IMG/VR virus record: IMGVR_UViG_3300034072_000758
Span: 1-64,000 of that record
Length of the DNA: 64,000 nt
Direction: 5' to 3' (one strand)
Part shown: positions 7,338-57,549 of the stretch, in pieces
Layout of the letters: each line of letters begins with the position of its first letter
How positions within the stretch are numbered: the first letter of the stretch is position 1
The notes under the pieces: generated by a model
What the model was told of the DNA's origin: nothing
The model's input: only the letters and a program-made list of their open reading frames with translations
Database searches by the model: none
Program-made: the position numbers and the translations under genes

Positions 7338-7631
7338 TTATTTGTGAAGCGTGTAAGAAATAACCGACCCACTTGTGAAGCGTGGATCATATTGACTAAA
7401 AGAATGCGTAATGTGCGATTCACCATCAGCACTTACAACACTATACGGGGCGAGAGACGCAACCCACTTATCAGCCAATTCAATTTCTTCTGGGTCCATG
7501 TCTGAATCATCACCGTTGATCAGATACGAAGCCCAAGCTTCTGGACCATCTATAGTCTCGACTTCGATTTCTTCATTGAGGTTATCTTCGTTCAAAAGAC
7601 TTTCGTTAACAATATTCATGAAATCGCGCAT
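7338..7631 (-). CDS. Small acidic protein with CTS-like N-terminus
   Basis: MRDFMNIVNE-SLLNE-NLNE; WASYLINGD motif; TATAAATA upstream at 7665-7672 (minus). Confidence 0.7.
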   Translation of the reverse strand: MRDFMNIVNESLLNEDNLNEEIEVETIDGPEAWASYLINGDDSDMDPEEIELADKWVASLAPYSVVSADGESHITHSFSQYDPRFTSGSVISYTLHK

Positions 7632-7707
7632 AGTAAATAACCTTTTTAATTGATAAGTATATTCTATTTATAGTATATTGTTTAAATCGAAGAGAGAATA
7701 GAGTAAG

Positions 7708-8424
7708 ATGAAAGTAGCAATTATCTCAGCTTATTACAATGAAAGCCTAGATGTGCTACGGCGTTGTCACGATAGTGTTAAGACCCAAACACATACTGAC
7801 GTTACACATTACTTTGTGTCGGACGGAAACCCAAACACAGCACTCGATACTTGGGATTGCGTTCATATAAAATTACCTAATCATAATGATTACGGTGACA
7901 CGCCACGAGCGGTAGGAAGTTTGTCGGCAGTTGCCTTGAACTACGATGCCGTAGTTTTCTTGGATGCTGACAACTTCCTTACCCCGGACCACATCGAAAA
8001 AATGGTCTCTTATTCGAAGTTTACAGGGGCCGACATCGTTACAGCCACCCGCTTTCTTGTCGATATTGACGGGAAGACCTTGGGTGTCTGTAACGAGTCG
8101 GATGGGAATAACTTCAACGATACGAACTGCTATTTCATCACAAGTAAAGCGTTTGATGTTTTCCGTTATCTCGGCTTCAAGAGTAATAAACACGGGATAG
8201 TAGGAGATCGTATGTTCTGGAATGCTGTCAAACAGATGCCATTCTCCCGGTCCCATTTCTCTACACCAACGGTCTATTACACCACCACATTCGCATTCCA
8301 CTATCAAGTTCTCGGCCTGACGCCTCCCGACCACACTAAGGTCATTGTGCGCTTCTCAGACGAAGAACATCACCGCATGATCAGCTATCCAGAATATGTG
8401 AAGCTCACCAAGGGACAAAAATGA
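7708..8424 (+). CDS. Glycosyltransferase family 2
   Basis: IISAYYNE, VSDG and FLDAD (DxD) motifs. Confidence 0.88.
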   Translation: MKVAIISAYYNESLDVLRRCHDSVKTQTHTDVTHYFVSDGNPNTALDTWDCVHIKLPNHNDYGDTPRAVGSLSAVALNYDAVVFLDADNFLTPDHIEKMVSYSKFTGADIVTATRFLVDIDGKTLGVCNESDGNNFNDTNCYFITSKAFDVFRYLGFKSNKHGIVGDRMFWNAVKQMPFSRSHFSTPTVYYTTTFAFHYQVLGLTPPDHTKVIVRFSDEEHHRMISYPEYVKLTKGQK

Positions 8425-9290
8425 AATCCAATCTCATTATCGGCGTAATCAAAGGCTATGACTGGTCCAAGGTAAGCCTATGGGCCTTGAGCATCATTAC
8501 TAGCGGTTTCAAAGGCACAGCGGCAGTCATTCAATACTATGACCCCGATGGTATCGAGCGCGATGAAGAAGTAGCTAAGAATCTAAAATCTCTTGGTATC
8601 CAAGTCATCAATATGAGATTGGAAGGTCAAATCTTTTCCAGACGTTTCTATGACATTCATTCAGTATTGCGATCCAGACTGGACTCGTTCGATCATGTGA
8701 TTGCTACCGATGTTCGTGACGTTATGTTCCAGAGCGACCCTGCGGCATGGCTCTCTCAGAACCTCAAGAAGGGCATCTACGCAGCTACGGAAGGGCTTCG
8801 TTATCGAGACGAAGATTGGGGTAGAAGCAATCTCGCTCAATCTTTCGGCGCAGATGGTATGCGGATCATGGATGAATTGATTTACAACGCTGGGGTAATC
8901 AGCGGTAAAGCCGAAAGCATTTCTGATTTGTTCTACAACATTTATGTATTGTCGGAAATTGCCAATATGCCTTCGGGTGGTGGTGGTCCAGATCAGGCGG
9001 CGTACAACATGCTTCTCAACATGAAAGCATACCAGTCCGAAGCTCAATTCGGCAACCACGAGGATGGTTACGCCGCTCAATTGGGGACCACAGCCGATCC
9101 GTCCAAAATCGACCGCTTCCGTCCATTCTTAGTTGAACCGGAACCGATCATGGAAGATGGCGTGGTGAAAACAAGTACAGGTATTCCGTTCTGCGTTGTT
9201 CACCAATATGATCGTCACCCGGAATGGGATAAGATAATCAGAGAGAGGGTAAACAATGAATTACGCGATCTACGTGCTCGAAATAGCTAA
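8421..9290 (+). CDS. GT-A fold glycosyltransferase
   Basis: TDVRDVMFQ, YNAGV, DQAAYN and VHQYDR motifs. Confidence 0.8.
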   Translation: MKSNLIIGVIKGYDWSKVSLWALSIITSGFKGTAAVIQYYDPDGIERDEEVAKNLKSLGIQVINMRLEGQIFSRRFYDIHSVLRSRLDSFDHVIATDVRDVMFQSDPAAWLSQNLKKGIYAATEGLRYRDEDWGRSNLAQSFGADGMRIMDELIYNAGVISGKAESISDLFYNIYVLSEIANMPSGGGGPDQAAYNMLLNMKAYQSEAQFGNHEDGYAAQLGTTADPSKIDRFRPFLVEPEPIMEDGVVKTSTGIPFCVVHQYDRHPEWDKIIRERVNNELRDLRARNS

Positions 9291-9387
9291 GGTTGCATTT
9301 ATTGGAATGGCCGCTTTTATGGTCATCATCGGTGTATTATATTCACTCATGTGCGCGGCTAAAGTCATAGTCAAGCACAAAGAATGA
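9256..9387 (+). CDS. Small membrane protein (43 aa, not in ORF track)
   Basis: MNYAIYVLEIAKVAFIGMAAFMVIIGVLYSLMCAAK...; GAGGG SD; fills the gap. Confidence 0.55.
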   Translation: MNYAIYVLEIAKVAFIGMAAFMVIIGVLYSLMCAAKVIVKHKE

Positions 9388-10707
9388 TTACATCACGAAT
9401 ATTTTGCCTTCGCATTCATTTAAAGCCGCATTGAAATTATCTTCGAGTTCTTCCGCCATGTCGGTAAGAGCATTGTTGTAATATTCATAATCGTGCTCGT
9501 TACCACGAAAGCTATAATAACCATTTTGACCGGCCTTAAAATGCTTCGGAAGTGGATTGAATTTGATCTTACCAGTCAACATATATTGGGCTAATAGCTC
9601 AAGAGTAAATTCAAATTCATTTCTGAGCGCAGCTTCTCTTGCCGATCTCATAGTCCCAATGTTCTGAAAGAAGTATTTTAGGATTTTGTCAGTATTAGCT
9701 TTTTTCTGATGCTCACCATATCGTCCGCTATTGTTGTGTCTTTCTTCGCTATTACCTACCTTTACGCCATAGTTTTCTAAAATATTATTCATATATCGGA
9801 ATATTATGTTTCTAACTTCCGTGAAATGATAAACTTGTCTTTGGCTTTGACCGGTAGTGAAATTGTATTTGCCGTAGCGTGAAATTGCGTGACCGAAACG
9901 GTGAGCGATAATCCAAGCTGTCATAGGAACCTTTTCATCGCCCTTGTTGCTGTTGAACAAGATGTTGATAGCATTTGGTTGATACTGGAACTCGGACAAA
10001 GCTTTCGGCATGTTTTGTTCCAGCCACTCTTGATCGACCATACCAATTTCGCTATTTCGATTAGCTTCCGGCGAATTGACGAAATACATGTTGTAGTTAT
10101 GTGGTGTTTTAGCCCACTTCGCCTTGATCTTCTCAACGGCTTTTGGGTTATTCAAGAGCTTGCGTTCATTATCCTTATAAGAACTGTTCTTATCCCAATT
10201 ACCTACCTTCTGGAAATTGGCAATTGGCATTTCTTCAAGGGTCTCTTCACCTTCGGTCAATGAGGCCATCAGTTCCTTTACAGTAGGTTCATCCATATAC
10301 CCAAAGTGCGGCATTTTCAGTCCACGAATTTTAGTCTTCTCGGTGGCACCGTTGCTCATGAAAGCCTTGATACACTGGAAAGCGTCATCTGATTTTGGAC
10401 CCATACCATCAATCGGCGGAGCGAAATGAATCACGCCATTTCGGTATCGCCCACCAACACCTACCCAACCTCTGATCCAGCTATCATACCCGGCATTCGA
10501 TCCTGTTACTTCAAAATATTCCTCAGCATGAGACGCGCTAAGGGTCTTTGTACCGGCAGTACCTTCGTCGCCCAAAATGAAGCGTCCAGTCTTAGCATTG
10601 AACATAAAGCGACGATTTTTGATTTGTTTAAAATCAAAGCGACGAGTCTGGTGGGCCTTGTCAGATAGGCTGGTTTCGTTTTCATTAAGAATTTCAAAGT
10701 AACGCAT
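9388..10707 (-). CDS. Multidomain late protein with CTS-like N-terminus
   Basis: MRYFEILNE start; internal LTE/LEE linker; HRFGH motif; TAAATA 5 nt before ATG. Confidence 0.75.
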   Translation of the reverse strand: MRYFEILNENETSLSDKAHQTRRFDFKQIKNRRFMFNAKTGRFILGDEGTAGTKTLSASHAEEYFEVTGSNAGYDSWIRGWVGVGGRYRNGVIHFAPPIDGMGPKSDDAFQCIKAFMSNGATEKTKIRGLKMPHFGYMDEPTVKELMASLTEGEETLEEMPIANFQKVGNWDKNSSYKDNERKLLNNPKAVEKIKAKWAKTPHNYNMYFVNSPEANRNSEIGMVDQEWLEQNMPKALSEFQYQPNAINILFNSNKGDEKVPMTAWIIAHRFGHAISRYGKYNFTTGQSQRQVYHFTEVRNIIFRYMNNILENYGVKVGNSEERHNNSGRYGEHQKKANTDKILKYFFQNIGTMRSAREAALRNEFEFTLELLAQYMLTGKIKFNPLPKHFKAGQNGYYSFRGNEHDYEYYNNALTDMAEELEDNFNAALNECEGKIFVM

Positions 10708-10712
10708 AAGAT

Positions 10713-10728
10713 TATTTATTACTAAATA
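10713..10728. promoter_or_regulatory. Back-to-back T4-type late promoters (TAAATA)
   Basis: TAAATA at 10718-10713 (minus) and 10723-10728 (plus), each exactly 5 nt from an ATG. Confidence 0.75.
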
Positions 10729-10733
10729 CGTGT

Positions 10734-11306
10734 ATGAAGTTTAGAGAATTGTTAGAACCTAAGAAGAGAATTTATATTGCTCGAAAACTACTTAATGGTG
10801 AAGACATCATTGCTTGGGCTAAGGAAAACGGTCTAACATATTGTTTAAAACCGGAAGATTTTCACACAACAATTTTCTATACAAAGAACGCTATTGACTG
10901 GTATGATGTAGAACGCCAGAATGATACGGTGGTATGTAATACCGATGGGACAGATCGTCACATTACTTTGCTAGGTAAAACTGCGTTGTGTTTAGTATTC
11001 AAAAATGAAATACTTGATAATCGTCATTTCCAACTTCGACATGATGGCTTAATTTCAACGTATAACGACCATATTTTACACGTGACTCTCTCATACCGGG
11101 AGTATGATCAGCCCCTCAACATCATGACTGTTCCGGTATATAGTGGGCCTCTAATCTTTGGTCCTGAGTATGTTGATAATCCCGACGAAGATAACGTTGA
11201 ATTTGAAGAAATGTGTCTCGATGAAAGTGAAACACAGGATTGTGAACTTGGTCCCTATTATCAAAGCGACGAAGAATTAGAAGCTCAAGGTGTAAAAAAG
11301 CTCTAA
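10734..11306 (+). CDS. acb1: Anti-CBASS Acb1-like (T4 gp57B-like) 2H phosphoesterase
   Basis: Two HxT motifs (FHTTIFY, LHVTLSY); IYIARK, LCLVFKNEILDNRH and PLIFGPEY align by eye with T4 gp57B. Confidence 0.8.
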   Translation: MKFRELLEPKKRIYIARKLLNGEDIIAWAKENGLTYCLKPEDFHTTIFYTKNAIDWYDVERQNDTVVCNTDGTDRHITLLGKTALCLVFKNEILDNRHFQLRHDGLISTYNDHILHVTLSYREYDQPLNIMTVPVYSGPLIFGPEYVDNPDEDNVEFEEMCLDESETQDCELGPYYQSDEELEAQGVKKL

Positions 11307-11312
11307 TATAGA

Positions 11313-11340
11313 TTGACAATATACCGTCATATGTTATCGT
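11313..11340 (+). promoter_or_regulatory. Sigma70-type early promoter
   Basis: TTGACA...TG-T-TATCGT upstream of GGAG-acaaaat-ATG. Confidence 0.6.
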
Positions 11341-11370
11341 GAAATATATCAATATTCACGGAGACAAAAT

Positions 11371-11721
11371 ATGACCGGTCTGACTATTCTCGCTAAAACC
11401 ATCGTTGTAGCTTTCAAGGAAGGCCGCAAGCGTTATGAAGTAGCCCGCCCGGTCACGGCGACGGTCGCGGATGATGCCTCACTTCGCGCATCCACCATCA
11501 GCCTGATCTCGGCTGGACAAAACGGCAGCATGGTCAACTGGAACGTCCGCGAAGCTACTCTGGCCGAAGTTCTGGCCCTTGCCGCGCAGTCGGCTCGCAA
11601 TTTTCTACTGACGCTCGGCGAAGAAAACGGAAAGTTCACGGTCGAAGACGATGGTGAAGTGCTATTCATCACCGACACCGAAACCACCCGATCCGAGGTA
11701 TTGGCTAAGGTATTCAAGTAA
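11371..11721 (+). CDS. Early hypothetical protein
   Basis: Own promoter and SD. Confidence 0.7.
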   Translation: MTGLTILAKTIVVAFKEGRKRYEVARPVTATVADDASLRASTISLISAGQNGSMVNWNVREATLAEVLALAAQSARNFLLTLGEENGKFTVEDDGEVLFITDTETTRSEVLAKVFK

Positions 11722-12172
11722 GCAATAACCGCATCATCATCGTGGCATTGGTGATTTCTTCCCAAGATGCGTTGATCCTAGCGGTATATCCGGTCATAGA
11801 TTCTATTTTGACCCATCGTTTGTAAGGGAGAACACCACCGCGTTCTCCCTTTATTTCGTAATACCCCTCCCCCATTTCTTGAATTGAAAAACTAGACACG
11901 AGGTCAAATTTGATCTCGAACTTTACATGTTGGAACACAACGCTCAAATAGGCGTCTGAAACCGTGGCCTTACCCTTGTCGTCGTTCACAAATCTGTTTC
12001 CGCGCCCGTGTATCAAAGAAAACACGACCGTTTTACCGGCTTCATATTCCAATGATATAATATCATCGCATCGTGCTTCTGCCTGATTGTACAGAATAAA
12101 CCAGTCGAGCAACGGTAACCCACATTCTAATATTTGCTCAGTCCGGTCGTCGCTCATAGCATAATTCTCCAA
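11714..12172 (-). CDS. Hypothetical protein (true start probably a few codons downstream)
   Basis: TTGACC-17-TAAAAT promoter upstream; GGAG SD. Confidence 0.6.
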   Translation of the reverse strand: MENYAMSDDRTEQILECGLPLLDWFILYNQAEARCDDIISLEYEAGKTVVFSLIHGRGNRFVNDDKGKATVSDAYLSVVFQHVKFEIKFDLVSSFSIQEMGEGYYEIKGERGGVLPYKRWVKIESMTGYTARINASWEEITNATMMMRLLLT

Positions 12173-12250: not shown

Positions 12251-13354
12251 ATGGTTAACGCTATGATGCTAGATATTAACTACGTTTGGAATGTCTTGGT
12301 TGCCAATCTACCGAAATCCCGGTCAGGTGGCTTCATCAAGATTTGCTGTCCGATGTGTCCAACTATGGGTGAAACACCGGATACCAGATTCCGTTGCGGT
12401 ATTACCAGAAACACCGATGGTGGCTTTGGTATAAACTGTTTCAACTGTGGTTTCAAAGCAAAATATGTCATGGGTAACGGTCTTTCCAAGAATGTGAAAG
12501 ACTTCATGTACGCCATCAACATCCCCGACCGGGTGATGATGGAAGTGGGTTATATGGTCCTTCTCGCCCAACGCCATTACAATAAGGCGGATGGTATAGT
12601 CGCTGAAATAGGCAGCGTTGCTACAGAGTTTGCGAGTCTACCTAAGAACTCGTTACCTATTAAAGAGTGGAAGGCTGAGGGATGTGATGATCCTAATTTC
12701 TTGGCCGTCTGTAAATATCTGGAAGGACGGGGTGATTATATAGCTAACAGCTATAATTATCACTGGTCCCCAGAAACCTCGGCCAAAATCAATCGTCGTG
12801 TGATTATACCATTTTATGATTATGGAGATCGCGTGGCTGGTTGGACTGGACGACTGATTGATCCTTCAAAAACTGATCGATACCTAACCAAAGGATCGAA
12901 AGCGCACTTGTTCAACAATCATCTTCTCTATGACAAGGAGATCGAAACGCTCATTGTCAATGAAGGCCCGTTTGACGCGATTGCTACTAATGGGGTGGCT
13001 CTACACGGTTCATCTATCAACGACTTTATTGTCAGCATCTTGAACGACTGCGGTAAGCGCATTGTCATTGTCCCTGATGGCGATAAGGCCGGTAGCAAGC
13101 TGATCCCGGTCGCGCTTGAGAATGGTTGGTCAGTGGCCTTCCCTAAGCTCCAAGGCATCTACAAGAAGGATAACTGGTGGGAAGATGACGTAGATGACCC
13201 GGCCAAAGCATGTGCCAAATACGGGCATCTTTTCACGGTTAGATCGATCATCGAAACAGCTACGGATAGCTCGTTCACGATACACATGAAGAGTAAGTTT
13301 TTGGTCGAAAAAGAAGAACCAAAACCAACTAAAAAAGTAAGCGAAGTAAGGTAA
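12251..13354 (+). CDS. DNA primase (zinc-binding plus TOPRIM)
   Basis: CPMC...CFNC zinc ribbon; RVIIPF, EGPFDA and PDGD TOPRIM motifs; adjacent to helicase. Confidence 0.9.
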   Translation: MVNAMMLDINYVWNVLVANLPKSRSGGFIKICCPMCPTMGETPDTRFRCGITRNTDGGFGINCFNCGFKAKYVMGNGLSKNVKDFMYAINIPDRVMMEVGYMVLLAQRHYNKADGIVAEIGSVATEFASLPKNSLPIKEWKAEGCDDPNFLAVCKYLEGRGDYIANSYNYHWSPETSAKINRRVIIPFYDYGDRVAGWTGRLIDPSKTDRYLTKGSKAHLFNNHLLYDKEIETLIVNEGPFDAIATNGVALHGSSINDFIVSILNDCGKRIVIVPDGDKAGSKLIPVALENGWSVAFPKLQGIYKKDNWWEDDVDDPAKACAKYGHLFTVRSIIETATDSSFTIHMKSKFLVEKEEPKPTKKVSEVR

Positions 13355-13419
13355 TTCAGGACTTTTTACCTTCTAAATATGAGTCCTCAAAAATAAGAAA
13401 GTATAGGAAAGAGTATAAT

Positions 13420-14733
13420 ATGGATGTTTTCAATGTAGAGTTACAGAAGCAGTTGGTGGCCTTTATGATGGCGGACTCGGAATCGTTCGCTATTTCACGG
13501 GACATCATTCGCCCTGAACTTTTCGACCGATCTTTAGAACCAGCCGTAGCCTTTATTTTGGACTACGCTAACCAACACAGCAATCTACCGCCAGTAGGTG
13601 TTCTATCGGCTTCTACGGGCTTTGACGTGCCGGATTTCCCCGACGCTAAAAGTCATCGGGACTGGTACACCCAAACCATTGAAAAATTCATTCAGAAGAG
13701 AACGCTCACCGATGTTATTCTGAACTATGCCGAAAAAATTCAGGAAAACAAAGAGCACCAAGTAGACATCGTAAAAGCATGTCAAGATGCTATGGCTATT
13801 TCTCTGATCAAGGATTTAGGTACGAATATCTTCAAGGATGCTGATCGCATTATTGAAAACTTCAAGGCCAACCAAGTTCTTGTTCCGACCGGCTTCAATG
13901 ACATAGACGGGAAGCTTTATGGTGGGCTGGCCGAAGAATCTTTGACGATTTTCGTCGGTCGTTCGGGTGAAGGTAAATCTCTCATTCTCCAAAATATAGG
14001 CATAAATTGGGCCGCAATGGGGAAAAATATCATTTATATCAGTCTCGAACTCTCCGAAGAATTGATTGGTCGTCGCTTGATTTCAATGGTCTCTGACTTG
14101 TCTACAACGGATGTTCTTAAAAACACTAAAGAAGCCTGTACCCGTATCAAGATTTTCGATAAGCGAAAACAAGCAGGTAACTACATCATCAAAGCCCTTC
14201 CGAATGGAAGTACGACAAATACAATCCGCGCGTTCATTAAAGAATACACGATTAAAACTGGTATCGAACCAGATGCGATCATTGTTGACTATCTGGACAT
14301 CATGTATCCAAACGAGAAGAATGTAGATATATCCAATCTCTTCACGAAGGATAAGTTCGTGTCGGAACAGCTTCGCGGTTTGTCCTTCGATCTCAAGGTT
14401 CCGGTCGTCACCGCGTCTCAGTTCAACCGATCTGCGACGGATACGGAAGAATTTGATCACTCACACATCGCGGGTGGTATCTCGAAGATCAACACAGCGG
14501 ATAACCTTATCTATCTCAATGCACCGAAGTCCAAGAAAGAAAAAGGCGAGTTTGAGATTATTTTTGGTAAGACACGTTCATCCGGCGCTGTCGGCGACAG
14601 ACTGAAACTCAAGTACAATAATCAGACCATGCGGTTACTTGATTGGGAAGGTCTACCCGATGTCGATCTCGACTTTGGTGACCTTGATGATGATAACGAT
14701 GCCAAGAACCAATTGATGAATCTGAATTTATAA
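13420..14733 (+). CDS. Replicative DNA helicase (gp41/DnaB-like)
   Basis: Walker A GRSGEGKS; SLELSE; IVDYLD; TASQFNR; KTRS. Confidence 0.93.
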   Translation: MDVFNVELQKQLVAFMMADSESFAISRDIIRPELFDRSLEPAVAFILDYANQHSNLPPVGVLSASTGFDVPDFPDAKSHRDWYTQTIEKFIQKRTLTDVILNYAEKIQENKEHQVDIVKACQDAMAISLIKDLGTNIFKDADRIIENFKANQVLVPTGFNDIDGKLYGGLAEESLTIFVGRSGEGKSLILQNIGINWAAMGKNIIYISLELSEELIGRRLISMVSDLSTTDVLKNTKEACTRIKIFDKRKQAGNYIIKALPNGSTTNTIRAFIKEYTIKTGIEPDAIIVDYLDIMYPNEKNVDISNLFTKDKFVSEQLRGLSFDLKVPVVTASQFNRSATDTEEFDHSHIAGGISKINTADNLIYLNAPKSKKEKGEFEIIFGKTRSSGAVGDRLKLKYNNQTMRLLDWEGLPDVDLDFGDLDDDNDAKNQLMNLNL

Positions 14734-14766: not shown

Positions 14767-14779
14767 GCTAAATATTAAC

Positions 14780-15088
14780 ATGGAATTTAATAGCGAAATG
14801 CGCGATTATATGGCTATCGCGCAGTTATATTCTTGGGATTATATGGATGCTGTTCATTTTGAAAAAGAACAGTTGACTGAATCTGCGCAAGTGGAGACGG
14901 AAAACCCATCAGTAATCGGAGAATACGCTGTTGGTGAATTGAAGGATTTGGTTTTTAAACTCAGAGCATTTCAAGAATCTCAAAGTGGTGACTATGGCTA
15001 TGGCTTTGAAATGGGGATGCAACGAGCGGCTGATATGGTTGAAAATTTAATTCTAAGATTAAGTGAAGAGAACGATGGACAGAAGTAA
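14780..15088 (+). CDS. Late hypothetical protein, first gene of a probable virion operon
   Basis: TAAATA at 14769-14774, 5 nt before ATG 14780. Confidence 0.7.
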   Translation: MEFNSEMRDYMAIAQLYSWDYMDAVHFEKEQLTESAQVETENPSVIGEYAVGELKDLVFKLRAFQESQSGDYGYGFEMGMQRAADMVENLILRLSEENDGQK

Positions 15089-15329
15089 AAAATTCAGAAG
15101 TATTCTTGAGGAAATCGGTGGTATCGAAGAAACCGATAAGGACTTGTTCTTGGAATCAAAGGCCAAGCATCTTATTGCCTCAAGTTCGCATTTGATAAAA
15201 TATATCACCGAGAACTACGACGAAGAAACTAGCGCCGATCTAGTGAAGCGCCTAATTAACTCAATCCGTACCGGTGACGAGAAGAAGTTTATTCGCGGTA
15301 TTCGCAATGTCGGGAACAATGACGAATGA
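15075..15329 (+). CDS. Late hypothetical protein
   Basis: MDRSKKFRSILEE; overlapping neighbours in the operon. Confidence 0.7.
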   Translation: MDRSKKFRSILEEIGGIEETDKDLFLESKAKHLIASSSHLIKYITENYDEETSADLVKRLINSIRTGDEKKFIRGIRNVGNNDE

Positions 15330-16312
15330 CCATTGTAAACGAAGCTGGCTTTATGGATCGTATGAAGAAAGTGGTAGGCGACCGTCTTACCAGTGTGAAG
15401 GATCGCGCGCTGTATGCGACTGGTGATCATAAAGCTCTCGGTCGTTTAAATTTCAATCTGGCAAAAAAGAAGGTCATGAAAGATTGGCATGAATATCAGG
15501 GTGTGAAGTCCCAGACCACCGATGCCACCCCAACCTTCGGAATGTTTTTAGATTTTCTGAAATATGAATACAACATTCAGGTCAATTCGGATCAATATGA
15601 TGCCGTCAAGGACAAGCCGTTCGATGATGAAGCTCACCTTCCAAAATTTATTGATCATTTGATCCAAAACGGAAACATCGTCGTGAACCGTGGACAAACA
15701 GTTCACAAGTCGGCGTACAAGCCTGATCCAAAAAAGCAAGCCCCGTCTAAGGACACCGATAAAGAAGGCACGGACCTACCAGACGCTCCGACCGATGATA
15801 GTGAAACTCCAACAGATGCGGAAACGACAGAAGAACCATCAACCGAGACAGCGGAAGTAGATGAATACAGCATTTTCCCGAATGAAAATGTGTATATCAA
15901 TCTCGGTAAGTTCAAAACAGAGATAAAGCAAAATGCTCGAACCTCCGAGCTTATTGAACTGTCCGAGTTTCTTTCTAAGCAAGATAATGCCGACAATATA
16001 GACATGTCCAGTGATCATGTAAAACTGATGGGTGTTATCGTATACGCTTTCCTTTCTGCTACATCTACTGATCAGGCCATCATTTCTAAAGAAAAAGATG
16101 ACGCTAATATCTCAAGATTGTACAAGAAGATAAACAATCTCATGATTAAAACGAAATTCAAGAGTGAATACTATAGCGAAATCGCCAAGAAGGCCGGTGA
16201 CACCAAGCATGAAGCAATTTCATACGTTAGAAACTCTGGTAGTAATTTTAAGTATGTCGTTGCTCTCGTGTTAATTTTACTCGATTATATGAAGCTCCGT
16301 AATACGAAATGA
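15326..16312 (+). CDS. Late hypothetical protein, possible head protein
   Basis: MTIVNE start; acidic linker; coupled ORF. Confidence 0.7.
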   Translation: MTIVNEAGFMDRMKKVVGDRLTSVKDRALYATGDHKALGRLNFNLAKKKVMKDWHEYQGVKSQTTDATPTFGMFLDFLKYEYNIQVNSDQYDAVKDKPFDDEAHLPKFIDHLIQNGNIVVNRGQTVHKSAYKPDPKKQAPSKDTDKEGTDLPDAPTDDSETPTDAETTEEPSTETAEVDEYSIFPNENVYINLGKFKTEIKQNARTSELIELSEFLSKQDNADNIDMSSDHVKLMGVIVYAFLSATSTDQAIISKEKDDANISRLYKKINNLMIKTKFKSEYYSEIAKKAGDTKHEAISYVRNSGSNFKYVVALVLILLDYMKLRNTK

Positions 16313-17142
16313 GTATCATAAAGACACTTTCCGAATCTAAATCATTCCCATCGATAAAACATCTTGAACGTATCGATCTCGATACTCTGTGTGAACTCGC
16401 GGTATTAAATTTTTGTACTCTTTATATATTACACAATATTCCAGAAACAAAAGCTTTCGCAAACAAGTACATTTCAGTTTTGATCTCGGCTAATCACACG
16501 CATTTTAAGCGTTGGGCTACCGGAGGGAATGATCAATATGCTGTGTTGTACGGAATTTGTAACGACGAAAAAGAAAAGAAGAAAGTCATCCCGGTTGGTC
16601 TCAACGCTATGGACACATGGCTTACTCAGTTGAAGCGGGATTCGCTGACCAAAATTGCTCACACAACATTCTTCACTCGATTGGATTATAATTTCCAAAT
16701 CAAGAATGCTTCTCTGAAAGCGGTTCGCAGACTTGTTTCTGACTGGACAAATTTGAACCACGAAGAGAAGCAATTTGCGACCACTCGTTTGTTACAAATG
16801 ATTCGTTCCAGAAACCCAAAGAACGATCTTCTTCACTATCTCGAACAAGCGGCACACCACCATGATCTTGAGCTTCATGACGTGTGTAATAAAGACACTG
16901 GCGACGGCTGTGGACATACCGAATATGGTGGCGCTCAACAATACAAACAAAAGCCTGAAAAGAATACAAATTGGGTTGCTGGCGCGGCTGCTATGGCTGC
17001 TGGCTATGGTTTAGCTCGCTGGGCGCATGGCCGCAAGGTTACCGAAGACGATGCTGGTGGTGCGGCCCTTTCTACAACTAGCTCAAGTAATATCGCAACA
17101 CATGTAAAGCCATTAGGAAATACCGTAATAAAAAGAACCTGA
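16309..17142 (+). CDS. Late hypothetical protein, possible virion protein
   Basis: MSIIKTLSE start; C-terminal VTE-D...TTSSSNIAT tail. Confidence 0.7.
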   Translation: MSIIKTLSESKSFPSIKHLERIDLDTLCELAVLNFCTLYILHNIPETKAFANKYISVLISANHTHFKRWATGGNDQYAVLYGICNDEKEKKKVIPVGLNAMDTWLTQLKRDSLTKIAHTTFFTRLDYNFQIKNASLKAVRRLVSDWTNLNHEEKQFATTRLLQMIRSRNPKNDLLHYLEQAAHHHDLELHDVCNKDTGDGCGHTEYGGAQQYKQKPEKNTNWVAGAAAMAAGYGLARWAHGRKVTEDDAGGAALSTTSSSNIATHVKPLGNTVIKRT

Positions 17143-17183
17143 TTTGAATAAATATTATACAAACAAATAAGAGGGTTACTTTT

Positions 17184-17497: not shown

Positions 17498-17632
17498 ATG
17501 ACTTTACGTGAGCTTTTTGAAGACAGTAAAAATATTTGGGTTAAGAAGAACAACAAGATTGTCAAAAAAAGACAGTCTACGTTGGACTTTTCCAAACCCT
17601 TAAACAAAGTGGAAGTTAAAACCAATGAGTAA
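17498..17632 (+). CDS. Small basic protein (44 aa, not in ORF track) with CTS-like N-terminus
   Basis: MTLRELFEDSKNIWVKKNNKIVKKR...; fills the gap and overlaps the next start. Confidence 0.6.
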   Translation: MTLRELFEDSKNIWVKKNNKIVKKRQSTLDFSKPLNKVEVKTNE

Positions 17633-44900: not shown

Positions 44901-46394
44901 TCGTGAAGACGTATGAACGCCATCAAAAGCTGTTACTGTAACGTTGGTAATGACATCTGCACCGTTATTTGCCGGGGGTAGCTTTCCTACAAACGTGCCG
45001 TCCGAGTAATCAAAGGTAATCTCGGATGGGAGAGGCGTGACGGTGTAGATCAATGGCTTACCATTCGGGTCTTGTGCGATAGGCTCTGGGATACCGACCA
45101 GCGTTGTGTTTCCCAAATCCTGAAACAAGACGGTGTTGCCATTGAATACTGGTGGTAAATCTTTTTCGTTTGTAATTAGAACAGCGAGGTCCGCCGATTT
45201 TATACCGTTCGTCGCCGAAATCGTAAAATCAATCGGGAAAAATTGTGGTTCTTCGGCATCAACCGGATATGGCGACATCGTGCCACTCAGTTCATTCGTG
45301 ACCGTGTTATAAACAATTTCTGGATAGTCTTCGAGGCCACTAACAGTGTAGGTATATGGGATCGGTGTATATGTAGACGAAACGATTTGTGTAGTCGTTA
45401 GTGTCGTGTTTTCCAGATATGTCCCCAGATCAAGCGCCCCACCGACTACACCATCAAAGGTTGGTATTTGAACATATTCAACTCTGATCTTGAACAGACG
45501 CGGGGTCGTATAGAGATCGGTTCTAGCACCAGCAATGACCGTGTAAGTCGTCGTATCGGGCACCATAGGGGCGATACCCGATGTATACCCGGTGGTGTTT
45601 TCGATTAGAATGCCATCTGGCAAAGAACCCGCCAGAATGACATATTCTATGGGTAGAGAACCCGGATCGGCAGCGAGTAATTGCGCGTCCCAGAAAAGTG
45701 TTTCGATAGCTGTATTACCTAGATTACCAGCCGGGGTAATCCATTTTGGCGCATACTCTGGTGGAACAACGGTGAGATAAAGCGCAAATTGTCTCGTTGC
45801 GGCAGAAGAGAGGTTCGATGCGGAAACGATGAATGTATAAATTTGATCTATTTCGACATTGATAGGAGTACCATAAATCTCTCCGGTATCCGTATTCAGG
45901 AACAAACCGGGTGGGAGACTTCCACCGACTAAGGTGTAAAATACCGGAAGATCGAGTTCATCTTCGGCCAAAAGATTATAGGTGAACGGCATATTGGTAT
46001 AAGCCATCGCATCCAAAATACCCGAAGGCGTGACCCATACAGGTGCGGGGACTTCCCCAACAACCATTCGTAATTGTTTTGTTATGCTGACCGAAGCGCT
46101 TGCGGCTTTAACAACGAACGTGTAAACACCGTCAGCACCAGTGATCGTGCCGGTGATTGTCCCACCCGGATTGACAGTCAAACCAGCCGGAAGAATACCA
46201 CTTTCAAAAGTATAAATGATTGGGAGACCGGTTGTTGTCTCCGCTTTCAGAGCTATATTCACGGTTTTAGACGGACGATACATGGAGCCATATGGCCCAA
46301 GCGTCTTTGTAGGAGATACCCACCAGATAGTTGGCGAACCTGATTTATTGAGTGTCAAGTTGCCACGCAACTTGAGTTCCGACAGTCTAAGCAT
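39000..46394 (-). CDS. Giant Ig-like repeat protein with LamG-like domains and Gly-rich C-terminus (fibre/adhesin)
   Basis: Many P-x-W-x-T...LG / YS...GxLP / GxISG / YTFxVxA repeats; WYHV and FHGVIDE LamG motifs; GGGG-rich C-terminal domain; TAAATA 4 nt before ATG. Confidence 0.85.
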   Translation of the reverse strand: MLRLSELKLRGNLTLNKSGSPTIWWVSPTKTLGPYGSMYRPSKTVNIALKAETTTGLPIIYTFESGILPAGLTVNPGGTITGTITGADGVYTFVVKAASASVSITKQLRMVVGEVPAPVWVTPSGILDAMAYTNMPFTYNLLAEDELDLPVFYTLVGGSLPPGLFLNTDTGEIYGTPINVEIDQIYTFIVSASNLSSAATRQFALYLTVVPPEYAPKWITPAGNLGNTAIETLFWDAQLLAADPGSLPIEYVILAGSLPDGILIENTTGYTSGIAPMVPDTTTYTVIAGARTDLYTTPRLFKIRVEYVQIPTFDGVVGGALDLGTYLENTTLTTTQIVSSTYTPIPYTYTVSGLEDYPEIVYNTVTNELSGTMSPYPVDAEEPQFFPIDFTISATNGIKSADLAVLITNEKDLPPVFNGNTVLFQDLGNTTLVGIPEPIAQDPNGKPLIYTVTPLPSEITFDYSDGTFVGKLPPANNGADVITNVTVTAFDGVHTSSRDYQFVSWLNTPPIFDTPAINLGNVVEGFSFTFTIEAHDPQFKPIIYTLSNSAINTTIDPFSGVVSGEAWYLTTPGANTETCYFTVDATDGVLSTSQEYFFTIEKDLMPEWITPAGNLGTHLGMVEFNHTFVGTSKNTNQGLVYYIADRGNLPVFSELILTGNGISGKFPNDANNSPNWEETYTFDIGIYDVDNGGVEVPNHRVVRTFSITNKYNNAPVWRDTIDNTTLGSDYSAAPITPGPSPVSTPVWQSPSVLGTTAGHFGLAEDVTLMIYASNATSYFLNSNTSSELAKSGLDFFGHQDDYYATLADPTQSPVYHQIYTMLLDDPMTNVAIIAGSVKKNPTNDAEYFTSEHKFYVTAQNPAGVAEKPFTYHIDNIIVLASGWEQTPIGYAFANAAFEPYVEAVDLDGQIVEYFYSESSSILYESNSNRIMIDQGAGRIYGTYPQVAQDQIIEFTLQAYDHSESITEGFYYKTPMSFRVIARFLQAPIWQGPSSFGRVQNMYFTTQLQAVGAGNAPSINYTVVGGVLPPNFTLSSTGKLSGIAETVDEDTVYTFTIRASNTIRYTDREFTFTVYKNVTPTWTTIDQSTGNFYQNNGNNVIQTGVVFNDLNGVYGSGFTPKIVLTDRSGSPENIAFGLYKGEYIHQYIPFDGDFNGVEVDVYAPNLPAANMITTGSLTPSRALTPADFDSGKFGNGAILDGTLWGYHEVTRVQGFENYGIECFVKPTSNSGVQTLFKCGNMECFYANDRFVLTDGPSQIMSNIIRVGEWYHVSIINHNPGATGSNTNYSMAIDGMYIGTIVSTYPVFSGTTNAVIGAGSVAGNNPFHGVIDEYVFTKNDTWMLPSTPPNIEADRFFYDITHHADFNNNVNNQGTGANTLTTHGVVSYVSQGNGNYALNFNNLWVSGDVSLQEEFTIEIVVGTYDATDCTLFTYGDADGFKLKRVNNELIFESKGVVTLSAPVLLAGANSIVLSKSEKNTYLVINNQIVDEIYTNPRVTYTGNSFTLGSDIGGTNKLFGLVDSFTITNGVSKFRKSFQPYDNPRSDLITGQVKGFFPLEQNDTVYTFKATVSDHLATSEERTFSMLNLKDVDPYFNTNPNLGEWIERYSVATGVSAGDVERYPVVYSIVGGNFPSSLTFDTTTGGISGTAPLVNGSLTRYEFTVQADDSNHVTTRDFFIDVEEDYVPVWQTPNSVTLAQVFGGDSFSATVQATDQNLSQTLVYANAGGSWPPDSTVSTGGQISGTIPVSAVTANYSPIISVTDGNAVVNSTFLIEVIQNQPPVFQTPGYTIFDSWEQTIQLDSDTDSPIVINIVEPNNTTMTLDIASPDWVVISNVINANGLSQIYISNVTFPAVENDTEFYLDVTADDSVLSASERYTFKVKFNSAPIWQNAAYLGEVQESSAFMKTMVATSNGLPVYYSIDSTDMVDVHIDAISGMLTWVSPPVFVDTVYSVTLNASTGIKFTKQTFTIMVRRNWPPVWQTGSNLGTYLENRAVNFTLLATDPNGHQVNYSPSAGTTIPPFLTANYAAAGNTATFDGVTQFVGNDTVYSFTIGALDDYHLVEREFTFTVLYTPAPQWITPAGHLGNLVENEPVNIQIQATSNAAFLPLTYSTVGSWPNNLTLLSNGVISGSVQSGLYANGTVLTLTARVEDIDGRANTRTFTANVVAADMMTVTSPTGVVTTYKANSKIIMNAAGEWKLRAHQNLSFPTKLWGGGGGGWHGGVGGFANGTVTVTANTAMTVWVGGGGVTGTFSLGRQGGFGGGGYCGPSYGPGYFAGSGGGLSGIFISNSTPIQANAIIIAAGGGGAIDVDGGNGGGLTGVAGGFRNGQQLQGGGGTQLAGGTASTAAGATPTPGGALYGGNGAVNISSRSGGGGGGGYFGGGGGGSGSGSQVSAGSGGGGGSSYIASPYLSNGTTVIGVGYVPPMTSDVDYISNAAASGAYMGVTGNGNGIVSANGLVVIIIP

Positions 46395-54506: not shown

Positions 54507-54509
54507 TTT

Positions 54510-55343: not shown

Positions 55344-55464
55344 AAGTATTTAGAGGTCCATTTTTCAGCATATTAACATATGTTTTAATATTCGATTTTG
55401 ACCATAAATACATTACTTGATCATCCGCCTCTTGACAGAAAACATCATTCTGTTAATTTGAGGC

Positions 55465-56052
55465 ATGAACTTCTATGACACCAGCCGCCAAAAAGATTGG
55501 GATCATCTTAATTATGTGATCGCCGCCCCCGGCGCGACCAATATTCTATTATTGGATGGCCAGTACGATCCAGATCAATTATGGTTAGACCTCGGACAGG
55601 TTTTTATATACAAACCCCTAATCGAAGAAGTGGTCGAAAAGAAGAGAGTTCGCTACCGCAAGAAGCAGAAATGGGAACCCATTCCCACCACTGAACGCGA
55701 TTACTATATCTATGATTATATTCCCACGCATTTTTATGATTATTTCTTCAATAACACAAAAAGCGAATATGTGAAACAATATAGAATACTGTTCCCCGAA
55801 GGACGATTACTACAAATTAACACAATGTCGGAAAGCGAAACAGCGGCGATATTTGTGTTAGATAAAATGACTGCCGCTCAGGGACGGGATTGGTTAAAAA
55901 ATAATACAATAAGCTTTTGGAGTATCAGTACCAATTCTCGTGGAGAACTGACAGTTCGCTTAGAAAGCGACGATGATGCTATTCGTTTCAAACTGGAATT
56001 TGGAAAATTAGCCGAACCAGCACATTGGTGGAAACGGAGTAAGCCGGATTAA
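55465..56052 (+). CDS. Hypothetical protein (DAxxFKL family)
   Basis: WLKNN...RLESDDDAIRFKLEFG; TTGACA promoter directly upstream. Confidence 0.65.
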   Translation: MNFYDTSRQKDWDHLNYVIAAPGATNILLLDGQYDPDQLWLDLGQVFIYKPLIEEVVEKKRVRYRKKQKWEPIPTTERDYYIYDYIPTHFYDYFFNNTKSEYVKQYRILFPEGRLLQINTMSESETAAIFVLDKMTAAQGRDWLKNNTISFWSISTNSRGELTVRLESDDDAIRFKLEFGKLAEPAHWWKRSKPD

Positions 56053-56237
56053 CCCCGACCTTTTATTTTCACCACAATACCATTTTTCAGTTCAACGTTG
56101 ATACGCTTCATCTGGACATCGCAAGTCCCGATCTGAGGCTGGCCGTCAACTACCCACGGACGAATAGTGAACCCATTTTCGCGCGCCAATGTGTCGGCGT
56201 CATCTAGCGACAGTCCAAGAAGTTGCTCATCTCTCAT
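56049..56237 (-). CDS. Peptidase inhibitor I78/I13-like small protein
   Basis: LLGLS...GTCDVQMKRINVELKNGIV...G matches the T-x-D-x-x-x-x-R-x-N loop pattern. Confidence 0.6.
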   Translation of the reverse strand: MRDEQLLGLSLDDADTLARENGFTIRPWVVDGQPQIGTCDVQMKRINVELKNGIVVKIKGRG

Positions 56238-56303
56238 TGTTTAATCCTCGATTTACCAAATTTTAGAGCATTTATCCGTCCGAGTCAATGAATAAATATC
56301 ATT

Positions 56304-57080
56304 ATGACGGCCTCATTAACTCTTTATCAGACACCAAGAGTAGTCACATTGTCTTTAGCGGAAGGTATTCTCATGCATTACCCAATAAATCATACTGCCT
56401 TCAAGATCACAAAAGGAATTACGACTGAAATTCTTTTCTTTATTAAAAACATTGACAATGTTCCGGTGACTACACTTGTCGGTACGCCAAAGATTATCAT
56501 CAATACTCAAAATAATGAGATCGAAATTCTTCAAAAGGACTTCGAACTGGTCAACGCTGAGAAGTCTTTGTGGAAGATCGTGTTCACACCACAAGAAATG
56601 GAATCCATTCCTCTGGGCGGATATATCTATTTTGTCGTGGTTAATAATGCGGGCGTAGAGACCTTCCTGTACACCGACAAGGCATACGGTGCCACTGGAA
56701 CGCTGGAAGCCGTCACAGGGCCTTACGCAGCCCCACAGGGGCCTGTTATCGTCCAGCGCCGCGACATGCTCTGGGACAACGGTATTGTCGTCTCTGGCTC
56801 TTATAAAAGCGCCGAAAATCCATATCAAACCGGCAATCATGTCATCAACACTTCGATCACCGAGTTCACCGGTAATATCTACGTGGAAGCATCAACTTTC
56901 GATCAACCGTCTCAAAATCACGTTGATTGGGAAAAAGTACACACCGTCGAAGTCACCGAAGCTACAAGCAACGCGATTGAAATATCATTACCATCGGCGG
57001 GATATAAGTGGCTACGCTTCTCTGCTAAAGAGAAAACAGGTAACGTAGTTACGTTCTCATACAGTAGATACATGGAATAA
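56304..57080 (+). CDS. Late beta-rich protein, probably structural
   Basis: TAAATA 5 nt before ATG; FTGNIYVEAS...W and WLRF motifs. Confidence 0.7.
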   Translation: MTASLTLYQTPRVVTLSLAEGILMHYPINHTAFKITKGITTEILFFIKNIDNVPVTTLVGTPKIIINTQNNEIEILQKDFELVNAEKSLWKIVFTPQEMESIPLGGYIYFVVVNNAGVETFLYTDKAYGATGTLEAVTGPYAAPQGPVIVQRRDMLWDNGIVVSGSYKSAENPYQTGNHVINTSITEFTGNIYVEASTFDQPSQNHVDWEKVHTVEVTEATSNAIEISLPSAGYKWLRFSAKEKTGNVVTFSYSRYME

Positions 57081-57081
57081 T

Positions 57082-57549
57082 ATGCGTTACTATAATATCC
57101 TACAAGAAATGGCGTTAGATCGCGTATTTTATCATGGCACCAATCATGATTTTAACCAATTTGAAAAGACTAGAGGAACTGTGGCTAGTATATTTGGAAG
57201 CGAACAAGTTGATCGTCAAGGTTTCTTTTTTACGGATAATGTGGAGTTCGCCAAAAACTTTGGTAACAAAATCATCAAAGTCAAACTTAGAATGAACAAG
57301 CCATTCGATCTGTCAAACGGATTGAGTTCTACTATGACCGCCGAATTAGAACGCCACGGTATTTCTTTCAAATGGATGTTGAGCAATGAAGATTGGGAAA
57401 AATTCGACGGCGAGGAAGGAGAAATGTTCGTAAACGCCTTGAAAGCTCTTGGCTACGATAGTGCTATTATTCAAGAGCCGGATGATCACGGCCACGATCA
57501 GACCGCATATATAGTGTTCGATCCTTCCCAGATTAAAATCATTGGATGA
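57082..57549 (+). CDS. ADP-ribosyltransferase-like domain protein with CTS-like N-terminus
   Basis: FYHGT, GFFFTDN..FA, GYDS and YIVFDPSQIK resemble the ART-PolyVal-type domain; MRYYNILQE start. Confidence 0.7.
   Translation: MRYYNILQEMALDRVFYHGTNHDFNQFEKTRGTVASIFGSEQVDRQGFFFTDNVEFAKNFGNKIIKVKLRMNKPFDLSNGLSSTMTAELERHGISFKWMLSNEDWEKFDGEEGEMFVNALKALGYDSAIIQEPDDHGHDQTAYIVFDPSQIKIIG

Follow-up and report, generated by a model that had tools for sequence, protein, structure and literature searches.

Unrelated late proteins of a jumbo phage share a short N-terminal peptide that resembles the T4 capsid-targeting sequence

Unrelated proteins encoded by a jumbo phage begin with a common N-terminal peptide tag. 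The motif is genuine, it works as a peptide, and it goes together with late promoters. The tag begins at Met1, ends at residue 8–13 and follows a single plan, in which Met comes first, followed by a basic residue, one that is aromatic or large and hydrophobic, two hydrophobics and finally Glu. We consider it likely that this peptide is a capsid-targeting leader of the T4 type. Because the tag almost perfectly predicts virion proteins in the related Agrobacterium phage Atu_ph07, it probably marks proteins that are carried into the cell with the DNA.

The phage is a metagenomic assembly, known here from sequence alone, with a genome of 516,805 bp; the window that we analysed is its first 64 kb. 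Its kin are Sinorhizobium phage Phosso and Atu_ph07, both among the nearest cultured relatives, with capsid protein identities of 78% and 67%, respectively. Its head and late genes include a Peptidase_S77 prohead protease, a gp23-like capsid protein (Gp23 match, E = 4e-91), a portal and a gp55-like late sigma factor (phrog_12791, E = 6e-76).

Results

A shared N-terminal motif on unrelated proteins

A preliminary description of this DNA had singled out five main N-termini, all of which are in place (MRDFMNIVNE, MRYFEILNE, MKFRELLE, MTLRELFE and MRYYNILQE; Table 1). Its looser examples (KFRSILEE, MTIVNE and MSIIKTLSE) are present as well, with KFRSILEE lying 7 residues into 15075–15329. Written as a regular expression, the proposed pattern matched 15 of the 757 called N-termini genome-wide before gene starts were corrected, compared to 2.8 ± 1.6 in shuffles of residues 2–12 (maximum 8 in 500) and 9 of 3144 internal Met windows. 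When gene starts were reset by promoter position, 19 of the 757 N-termini matched, against 2.8 ± 1.7 in shuffles. A scoring matrix built from the five in-window examples only reached at least 10 bits in 5 of 673 out-of-window N-termini and in 1 of 2970 internal-Met windows (p = 0.001). By both measures, the motif is above chance.

Start correction leaves ~25 tagged genes, scattered over 517 kb, and most of their starts are independently fixed by TAAATA-N5-ATG spacing. The tags fall into three classes (MRYFEILNE-like, MRDFMNIVNE-like and MSNWYRNLVNLIE-like), with lengths of 8–9, 10 and 13 residues. Matches outnumber those in shuffles in every class: 15 versus 0.33 for the 9-residue class, 4 versus 0 for the 10-residue class and 6 versus 0 for the WYRN class.

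Could such a motif arise by chance, or be an N-terminal helix common to one divergent paralogous family? It is short, and three groups of cargo are paralogous (9388/142551/514400, the ADP-ribosyltransferases (ARTs), and Atu_ph07 gp53–62). However, the frequency of the motif exceeds that in the shuffles and the internal-Met windows 7- to 45-fold, and with the tag removed the 25 credible tagged proteins form 20 homology groups (phmmer, E < 1e-3), with Pfam domains of unrelated folds after the tag. The enrichment, the scoring matrix and the homology groups refute this explanation, to which we attach practically no weight, and the preliminary description was right to call these proteins unrelated. 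Within the ART family, homologous cargo stands under different tag classes; paralogues without a tag also occur, for example 106280.

Tagged genes, late promoters and leaderless starts

We judged late expression from promoters. Of the 14 core tagged genes, 10 have a TAAATA in the 100 nt before the start, but only 124 of the 743 others do (odds ratio 12.5, p = 1e-5), so that the motif is enriched ~12-fold on late-promoter genes rather than being equally common elsewhere. The earlier claim that all the examples lie in TAAATA late units also holds, including 57082, the second gene in its unit, and 17498, which follows 17184. In most tagged late genes TAAATA stands exactly 5 nt before the ATG, which implies a leaderless mRNA; leaderless starts are found in 9 of 14 core tagged genes and 30 of 743 others (p = 2e-9). 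The divergent pair 9388–10707 and 10734–11306 illustrates this arrangement, with an intergenic gap too short for a leader or ribosome-binding site. Gene 7338–7631 has a Shine-Dalgarno site, and TATAAATA lies 33 nt upstream (TAAATA at 7665–7670).

This coupling is also found across IMG/VR. In 32 of its stretches, an ORF that starts at a TAAATA-N5-ATG begins with MRYxE(hydrophobic)(hydrophobic)xE, compared to none in a control with an N9 spacer, and Peptidase_S77 is encoded on four of the five largest of these contigs. An IMG/VR scan for MRYFEILxxE that did not require the promoter gave two matches only, both inside a baseplate-like ORF, no more than expected by chance.

Given the coupling, the conserved start could act as nucleic acid to allow leaderless expression, either as an initial transcribed sequence or as a 5'-terminal translation element, with the peptide as a by-product. 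Yet the amino acids are kept while their codons vary freely: Arg is written CGT, CGC or AGA, Ile ATT, ATC or ATA, and Leu CTT, TTA, CTA, TTG or CTC. Because synonymous codons vary within the tag, the selected signal is the peptide. Moreover, ~40 leaderless genes have no tag, five core tagged genes are not leaderless, and the tagged genes of Atu_ph07 all have ordinary Shine-Dalgarno leaders without TAAATA-N5 spacing. These observations largely refute an RNA-level signal, which we regard as highly improbable.

Tagged proteins in the virions of a relative

The tags of Phosso and Atu_ph07 were read from the N-termini of their whole genomes. A degenerate DNA pattern of the tag (up to 3 mismatches) has no match in either phage, where the tag uses other residues. 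Atu_ph07 has the same head genes and a similar leader, as in MRLIDLLE and MRWEQLTE.

The virion proteome of Atu_ph07 (Table S5 in Attai et al., 2018; PMC6102473), which covers whole virions, heads and tails together, and so shows presence in the virion (PEG-purified, a type of preparation that can carry contaminants), includes 14 of the 15 ORFs that match the 9-residue regular expression, against 123 of 808 untagged ORFs; as nine of these matches are paralogues, they represent ~7 independent families rather than 14, and most of the matches belong to one tandem family. The fifteenth tagged ORF is absent from the annotation. Counted by class, 14 of 137 virion proteins are tagged, compared to 1 of 686 others (odds ratio 78, p = 9e-11), and a generic regular expression finds 21 virion proteins versus 2 others (p = 2e-15). 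The tagged virion proteins are gp43, gp53–63, gp381, gp408, gp482, gp548, gp561 and gp672, and the proteome contains homologues of window genes 57082, 15075 and 16309. In the parts of the Atu_ph07 paper available to us, the tagged proteins appear as hypothetical virion proteins, and we found no mention there of a shared leader (PMC6102473).

These data also bear on whether the leader is a turnover or chaperoning signal, for example for a phage Clp system, that sets the level or timing of an effector rather than its packaging. Short N-terminal motifs can serve as protease tags, and relatives encode ClpP (Phosso annotation; Atu_ph07 paper, PMC6102473). Against this, tagged proteins accumulate in Atu_ph07 virions with good peptide coverage, the motif agrees with the T4 tag position by position, as set out below, and we saw no known Clp N-motif. 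We therefore find a role in turnover very unlikely.

The expansion of the tag appears to be lineage-specific. Phage CBB, which is Rak2-like and shares the protease and capsid protein, shows neither tag enrichment nor N5 spacing; thus, this head type can occur without the tag, whose expansion is specific to the Atu_ph07-like lineage.

Comparison with the T4 capsid-targeting sequence

In T4, IPII and IPIII carry the capsid-targeting sequence MKTYQEFIAE, which is cut by the gp21 prohead protease, and Alt is processed likewise (PMC9026906, PMC8442874). Positions 4 and 7 of the T4 tag determine targeting and positions 8 and 10 determine processing, and the gp21 cleavage logo has the form (L/I)-x-E, as in LIE-9 (PMC9026906). 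In the 10-residue class of our phage, the same four positions are occupied by F/Y/I (4), I (7), V/L/I/F (8) and E (10); the 9-residue class is one residue shorter, with its spacing back from Glu unchanged. We wrote a regular expression that takes in the T4 tag, M[RKT]x[FYI]xx[IFL][LIVF]xE. It finds three proteins in T4 (ipII, ipIII and gp61.1) and exactly four in our phage, where 0.12 are expected.

In both phages, then, late proteins that are otherwise unrelated start with a leader ~10 residues long, which has an aromatic at position 4, hydrophobics at positions 7 and 8 and a Glu at position 10. Both also encode an S77-family prohead protease (Table 1) and a gp23-like capsid protein, and both have an ADP-ribosyltransferase among the cargo (Alt in T4). 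In the capsid precursor, [V/L]-M-E is kept immediately ahead of the residues that align with the N-terminus of mature T4 gp23, and the conserved [V/L]-M-E and V-L-E sites of the precursor lend indirect support to removal of the leader after Glu. However, the residues differ (Arg-Tyr-Phe-Glu-Ile-Leu versus Lys-Thr-Tyr-Gln-Glu-Phe-Ile in T4), and there are three length classes on ~25 genes here versus three matches to the regular expression in T4. The cargo here consists mostly of recognisable enzymes and most is not basic, unlike the T4 internal proteins; most of the genes are leaderless, and packaging and cleavage, established in T4, would here follow by analogy. The preliminary description had already read the motif as a T4-type leader. 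The head machinery, the T4 regular expression, the late enrichment and the proteome of the relative, which are all of its predictions that can be checked in silico, agree with that reading.

The tag could instead be a virion docking peptide for the tail, baseplate or whiskers, or be retained uncut, so that the enzymes decorate the particle and are not injected. The Atu_ph07 proteome comes from whole virions, Atu_ph07 has complex whiskers, and the tag of the anti-CBASS protein Acb1 has a Pro after its Glu, all of which would be in keeping with this alternative. However, the motif ends in (L/I)-x-E, the gp21 cleavage logo, and the protease encoded here is of that family. A similar leader is borne by head-module proteins whose genes adjoin those of the portal and protease, both here and in Atu_ph07 and Phosso (the head-module gene 320434 has the short L/I/V-x-E start MTILNE). 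Finally, ART, kinase, GNAT and Acb1 act in the cytoplasm and would be useless outside the cell. On balance we consider this alternative unlikely, and a T4-type targeting leader remains our preferred reading.

Tagged and neighbouring loci

Table 1. Tagged and neighbouring features of the window, and the prohead protease gene of the same genome.
Coordinates	Strand	Feature	Details
7338–7631	-	97-aa protein, cargo DUF6926	10-residue-class tag MRDFMNIVNE, tag codons 7602–7631
9388–10707	-	439-aa protein	9-residue-class tag MRYFEILNE; leaderless; TAAATA 10713–10718, minus strand
10708–10733	.	26-bp intergenic gap	Back-to-back TAAATA-N5-ATG late promoters, one per divergent tagged gene
10734–11306	+	190-aa predicted Acb1 (anti-CBASS 2H phosphoesterase)	Leaderless; tag MKFRELLE, then Pro
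14780–15088	+	First gene of late operon	Leaderless start 14780, TAAATA at 14769
15075–15329	+	84-aa 'virion structural protein'	phrog_11854; KFRSILEE near N-terminus
15326–16312	+	328-aa protein	Start MTIVNE, resembles MTILNE of 320434
16309–17142	+	277-aa protein	Start MSIIKTLSE; homologue Atu_ph07 gp64, virion-detected
17498–17632	+	44-aa ORF	Start MTLRELFE; late unit, follows 17184 (TAAATA at 17149)
56304–57080	+	Untagged 258-aa leaderless gene	Heads ART unit; TAAATA-N5-ATG promoter 56293–56303
57082–57549	+	155-aa predicted ART-PolyVal ADP-ribosyltransferase	Tag MRYYNILQE; second gene of unit
323839–324474		Prohead protease	Peptidase_S77, 75 bits; phrog_207 head maturation protease, E = 2e-57

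The tagged cargo includes Acb1, three ARTs, a GNAT acetyltransferase, a T7 gp0.7-like kinase and a ParB-C-like protein. The Acb1 and ART identities proposed in the preliminary description proved correct (Pfam PF23474 and PF18760). As predicted from profile matches, residues 13–153 of 10734–11306 form the Acb1 domain (81.9 bits, cut-off 27) and residues 15–153 of 57082–57549 the ART-PolyVal domain (70.4 bits, cut-off 31.2), which Pfam describes as the ART of polyvalent proteins. The ART paralogues at 90987 and 222225 are also above the PF18760 cut-off, and the Atu_ph07 homologue of 57082–57549, gp381, has the tag MKWQDLSE and was detected in virions.

Acb1 is the weakest case for a tag because Pro follows the Glu. 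A search for homologues of this protein found only two, neither of them tagged, with N-termini similar in length. In view of the Pro and of these N-termini, Acb1 may be targeted but uncut, or its leader may be no tag at all. An Acb1-like domain is also fused to the portal protein of Pam3.

Residues 157–439 of the 9388–10707 product belong to a widespread family of ~285 aa that Pfam does not list; where members of this family stand alone, they mostly begin with a similar tag. Tagged paralogues of the gene lie at 142551 and 514400, and some metagenomic homologues combine a tag, an ART-like domain and the 285-aa domain in one protein. A tblastn search of GenBank phages gave essentially no matches to the family. 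When the predicted model of the protein was compared with the PDB and AlphaFold clusters, the fold search returned only an uncharacterised relative; weak matches to a metallopeptidase or lethal factor, with probabilities of at most 0.15, were disregarded.

The remaining window examples are of mixed strength. Homologues of 15075–15329 include Atu_ph07 gp68, detected in virions, and a Phosso protein with MKTMRSIISE. Gene 15326–16312 is a weak case because it has no homologue in relatives. We did not count the tag-like MRDYMAIAQ of 14780–15088, a fringe example, because it is internal and without Glu. The ORF at 17498–17632, which the gene caller did not accept, is doubtful as a gene.

Discussion

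If the tag works as in T4, it would bind its protein to the scaffold core while the prohead is built and so trap it within the shell. The T4-type prohead protease would then probably cut after (L/I/V/F)-x-Glu, leaving the cargo free in the head. We infer scaffold binding, cleavage and a location inside the head from these parallels. Injection would be the last step, with the three ARTs, Acb1, acetyltransferase, kinase and ParB-C-like protein entering the host together with the DNA, as suggested by the T4 precedent and the cytoplasmic nature of the enzymes.

Other phages and mobile elements offer partial likenesses. PhiKZ-like giant phages such as SPN3US are also reported to package many proteins in a giant head, to eject them and to process them after Glu by a prohead protease. 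The phiKZ-like giants are, however, a different lineage, with the cleavage motif S/A/G-x-E and long propeptides, and to our knowledge they have no short shared N-terminal address. The polyvalent proteins of phages and conjugative elements likewise have ART-PolyVal and ParB-C-like effector domains (the latter by PHROG) and are presumed to be delivered with DNA. There, the domains are fused in one giant protein, whereas here they are separate small proteins with their own tags.

Phage proteins that travel with the DNA are known for few model phages, and finding them normally needs virion proteomics. It is tempting to speculate, as a tentative though real possibility, that a peptide code readable from sequence, usually coupled to a leaderless TAAATA-N5-ATG promoter, defines the full injected set of a large, mostly uncultivated phage group with a T4-type head protease. 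The packaged set of jumbo phages known only from metagenomes could then be read from sequence, and new effectors discovered by scanning N-termini. Our phage would inject 25 or more proteins, among them an anti-CBASS nuclease packaged in advance, three ARTs, a kinase and acetyltransferases, and host takeover and counter-defence would begin ahead of phage gene expression. Candidates for takeover and anti-defence in the first minute would be the ARTs, the kinase, the acetyltransferases, Acb1 and the 285-aa family of no known fold; an Acb1 packaged beforehand would counter CBASS in a new way. The T4 tag has already been used to load foreign proteins into heads, and the tag described here could provide a second address peptide for this purpose.

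Sequencing runs with DNA of this phage come from subsurface and soil metagenomes, and pieces of it occur in wastewater runs. Two metatranscriptomes contain only three short contigs, all inside 9388–10707, in which transcript 5' ends cannot be read. The strict TAAATA-N5-ATG spacing implies ~60 late mRNAs without a leader, an unusual feature in such a phage.

Leader classes and their reality

Genes were called with a simple codon-usage model, giving 757 genes genome-wide (gene names below are coordinates on the whole contig, of which the window is bases 1-64,000). The preliminary description had proposed that unrelated late genes begin with a short leader ending in Glu, like the capsid targeting sequence of T4. 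Every N-terminus that it quoted was found in place, and its motif is commoner than chance: 15/757 N-termini match, against 2.8±1.6 when residues 2-12 are shuffled and 9/3144 among windows starting at an internal Met. Outside the window, MRYFEILTE, MRYFEVLNE, MRYREILES, MRYEELLEA, MKFREIISE, MRDIINIILE, MREYMTILNE and MRLSELFDE are plainly the same motif, and a scoring matrix built from the five main in-window examples alone told N-termini outside the window apart from internal-Met windows (p = 0.001). Weaker cases are Acb1, whose tag Glu is followed by Pro, and the two short starts MTIVNE and MSIIKTLSE; MTLRELFE belongs to a doubtful 44-aa ORF at 17498.

Start codons were then corrected by promoter spacing (TAAATA-N5-ATG), independently of the peptide, which added genes 90987, 142551, 283555, 513514 and three of a longer class, bringing the credible tagged genes to about 25, in three classes. 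The eight- to nine-residue class (M-R/K-Y/F/L-x-E-I/L-L/I-x-E) has 15 matches against 0.33 in shuffles, the ten-residue class (M-R-D/E-F/Y/I-x-x-I-V/L/I-x-E) 4 against 0, and the thirteen-residue class (M-S/T-N/H-W-Y-R-N-L/I-V/I-N-L-I/M-E) 6 against 0. The last, which ends L-x-E as the other classes do, stands on six leaderless genes, all outside the window (141194, 255156, 258993, 261857, 262252 and 498670), and their cargo is mutually unrelated, except that 255156 groups with the tagged ADP-ribosyltransferases (ARTs).

With the first 14 residues removed, 25 tagged proteins fall into 20 homology groups, and in the ART family homologous cargo carries differing tag classes. Codons vary within the tag while the amino acids are kept: Arg is encoded by CGT, CGC and AGA, Ile by ATT, ATC and ATA, and Leu by CTT, TTA, CTA, TTG and CTC. 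The tag is thus modular and selected as a peptide. The statistics exclude both chance and paralogy as the origin of the motif.

Late promoters and leaderless starts

In 31 of the called genes, exactly 5 nt separate TAAATA from the ATG. Genome-wide, the N5 spacing from TAAATA to ATG occurs 56 times, N4 16 times, and other spacings (0 to 15) 3-9 times each; the promoter consensus is A-TAAATA at -12 to -6 (A of ATG = +1). T4 late promoters have the sequence TATAAATA, centred near -10. Taken with this geometry, the N5 spacing would place the transcript start on the start codon, which implies that late mRNAs from these genes are leaderless. Examples in the window are at 10708-10733, 14769-14782 and 56293-56306, among about 60 sites genome-wide. 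The first is the 26-bp gap between divergent tagged genes 9388 and 10734, which holds two back-to-back TAAATA-N5-ATG elements; a second such promoter pair is at 225597-225617. A 2,464-aa ORF at 39000-46394 (minus strand) begins MLRLSELKL and has TAAATA at the N4 spacing from its ATG; it probably encodes a large structural protein expressed late.

The proposed tie between tag and late promoters is borne out: TAAATA lies at most 100 nt upstream of 10/14 core tagged genes vs 124/743 others (odds ratio 12.5, p = 1e-5), and 9/14 vs 30/743 are leaderless (p = 2e-9). The ART gene 57082 follows one other gene in a unit starting at 56304, and the looser matches (15075, 15326 and 16309) lie within a late operon, 14780 to 17142, that is syntenic with a virion-protein cluster of Agrobacterium phage Atu_ph07. 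Directly upstream of this operon, 12251-14733 holds primase-like (phrog_47) and DnaB-like helicase (phrog_19) genes. In T4 the N5 spacing is weak (10 vs about 4), and the whole genomes of Atu_ph07, Sinorhizobium phage Phosso and CBB lack it.

Head machinery and comparison with T4

The IMG/VR virus record is a single contig of 516,805 bp (45% G+C) whose terminal repeats are direct; among its genes are one for a portal protein and the head genes tabulated below. By capsid protein, Phosso (469 kb) is the nearest cultured relative (78% identity), followed by Atu_ph07 (490 kb; 67%) and the Rak2-like jumbo phages (about 64%). The capsid precursor of this phage shares V-L-E and [V/L]-M-E sites with those of Phosso and Atu_ph07; the sites lie shortly before the stretch aligning with residue 14 of mature T4 gp23 and would be consistent with gp21-like cleavage specificity. 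The motif is real, tied to late promoters, and present in a genome with T4-type head machinery.

Coordinates of head, regulatory and cargo genes on the contig
Feature	Position	Remark
T4-family prohead protease	323839-324474	Peptidase_S77
gp23-like capsid protein	327198-328409	
gp55-like late sigma factor	307850-308638	
Acb1	10734-11306	PF23474, 82 bits; domain from residue 13
ART-PolyVal	57082-57549; 90987; 222225	
285-aa family paralogues	142551; 514400	
GNAT acetyltransferase	508716	100014 is a weak match
T7 gp0.7-like kinase	261059	phrog_15752, E = 6e-11
ParB C-terminal-like	93986	
DUF6926	7338-7631	
'Virion structural protein' PHROGs	494674; 15075-15329	

The T4 tag and its T-even variants have long been known. 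Its sequence is MKTYQEFIAE (PMC8442874), and the first 10 residues of IPIII are enough for packaging; residues 4 and 7 serve targeting and 8 and 10 processing, and a tag with Asp at position 10 still targets but is not cleaved (PMC9026906). Applied to T4 genes called in the same way, the regex M[RKT]x[FYI]xx[IFL][LIVF]xE returned gp61.1 as well as ipII and ipIII, the last two bearing the annotation 'internal virion protein'; in this genome it returns exactly the four ten-residue-class proteins (0.12 expected). T4 gp61.1 (NC_000866 18966-19130, gene 61.1) is a 54-aa hypothetical protein beginning MKTFKEFIKE, and its gene adjoins the primase gene.

The tag is most likely a capsid-targeting leader of the T4 type that has expanded here to the products of about 25 genes, mainly enzymes. 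By analogy, the leader would bind the scaffold core and be cut after the tag Glu, leaving tagged proteins inside the head from which the cargo would be injected. Alternatively, the tag may target another part of the virion, or may be retained. Four things set this case apart from the T4 tag: its scale, the division of the tags into three classes, a cargo of enzymes with Acb1 among them, and the pairing of the tag with a strict leaderless promoter spacing.

The tag predicts virion presence in Atu_ph07

Among the whole genomes compared (Phosso, Atu_ph07 and CBB), tag enrichment was not found in CBB and Phosso has few tags. Atu_ph07 has leaders of the same kind (MRLIDLLE, MRLFQLLE, MRLSEILE, MRWNDLLE) and a tandem family, M-R/K-W-x-Q-L-T-E. 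Its virion proteins were listed by ESI-MS/MS (Attai et al. 2018; PMC6102473, Supplementary Table S5), and we assigned 137/140 of the entries to ORFs from their molecular weights and positions, with RefSeq locus tags as a check. The nine-residue-class regex, defined on this phage, matches 14/137 virion vs 1/686 other ORFs (odds ratio 78, p = 9e-11), the sole non-virion match being an ORF outside the published annotation. A broader generic regex matches 21/137 vs 2/686 (odds ratio 62, p = 2e-15), and that of the preliminary description 7/137 vs 3/686 (odds ratio 12.3, p = 2e-4). Nine of the Atu_ph07 matches are paralogues, leaving about seven independent families. The tag thus predicts virion presence in this relative.

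Detected proteins include gp381, the ART homologue of 57082, with the tag MKWQDLSE; gp68 and gp64, homologues of 15075 and 16309; and gp205 and gp206, whose genes come right after that of the protease. The Atu_ph07 paper calls these hypothetical virion proteins (PMC6102473), and the literature searched yielded no account of a leader of this kind in jumbo phages like Atu_ph07 or Rak2. The tagged Atu_ph07 genes also bear on whether the tag might instead serve leaderless expression, with which it coincides here: they have ordinary ribosome-binding sites and lack the N5 spacing. Together with the codon variation inside the tag, this contradicts such a role.

Cargo proteins

The enzymes named in the preliminary description, Acb1 and ART, were both identified. 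The Acb1 domain aligns (E = 2e-9) with the C-terminus (residues 470-611) of the portal protein of cyanophage Pam3 (PDB 8hds), so an Acb1-like domain can form part of a virion, as it does in that phage. In addition to the three tagged ARTs, the genome has an untagged ART-PolyVal paralogue (106280-107629, 449 aa), which recalls the packaging of Alt, but not of ModA or ModB, in T4.

The C-terminal 285 residues (157-439) of the 9388-10707 product define a family of 1,201 representative clusters in metagenomes, which has no Pfam entry and is essentially missing from GenBank cultured phages. Most stand-alone members have the same kind of leader, followed directly by a conserved A-P-I-x-D stretch; invariant positions include His269, Arg270, His273, Glu366 and Glu370. 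The AlphaFold model of the 9388 protein is confident over residues 160-439, with the tag disordered, and has no match to a known fold.

Spread in uncultivated phages

Scanning IMG/VR for TAAATA-N5-ATG followed by M-R-Y-x-E-hydrophobic-hydrophobic-x-E gave 32 stretches, every one at the start of an ORF (66 to 497 aa where complete), on contigs ranging from 5 to 561 kb; an N9-spacer version of the pattern gave none. Neighbouring leaderless genes are often tagged as well, ART-like ones included. Peptidase_S77 is encoded by four of the five largest contigs with such stretches, the fifth being only 72% complete. Few genes are tagged in one complete member of 328 kb, but they include that of a small protein adjoining the head module. 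DNA of the window at 7000-12000 has copies at least 99% identical in a soil metagenome from the same study, and near-identical pieces of it turn up in wastewater, both in metagenomes and in two metatranscriptomes, so the phage or its close kin is not confined to the source sample.
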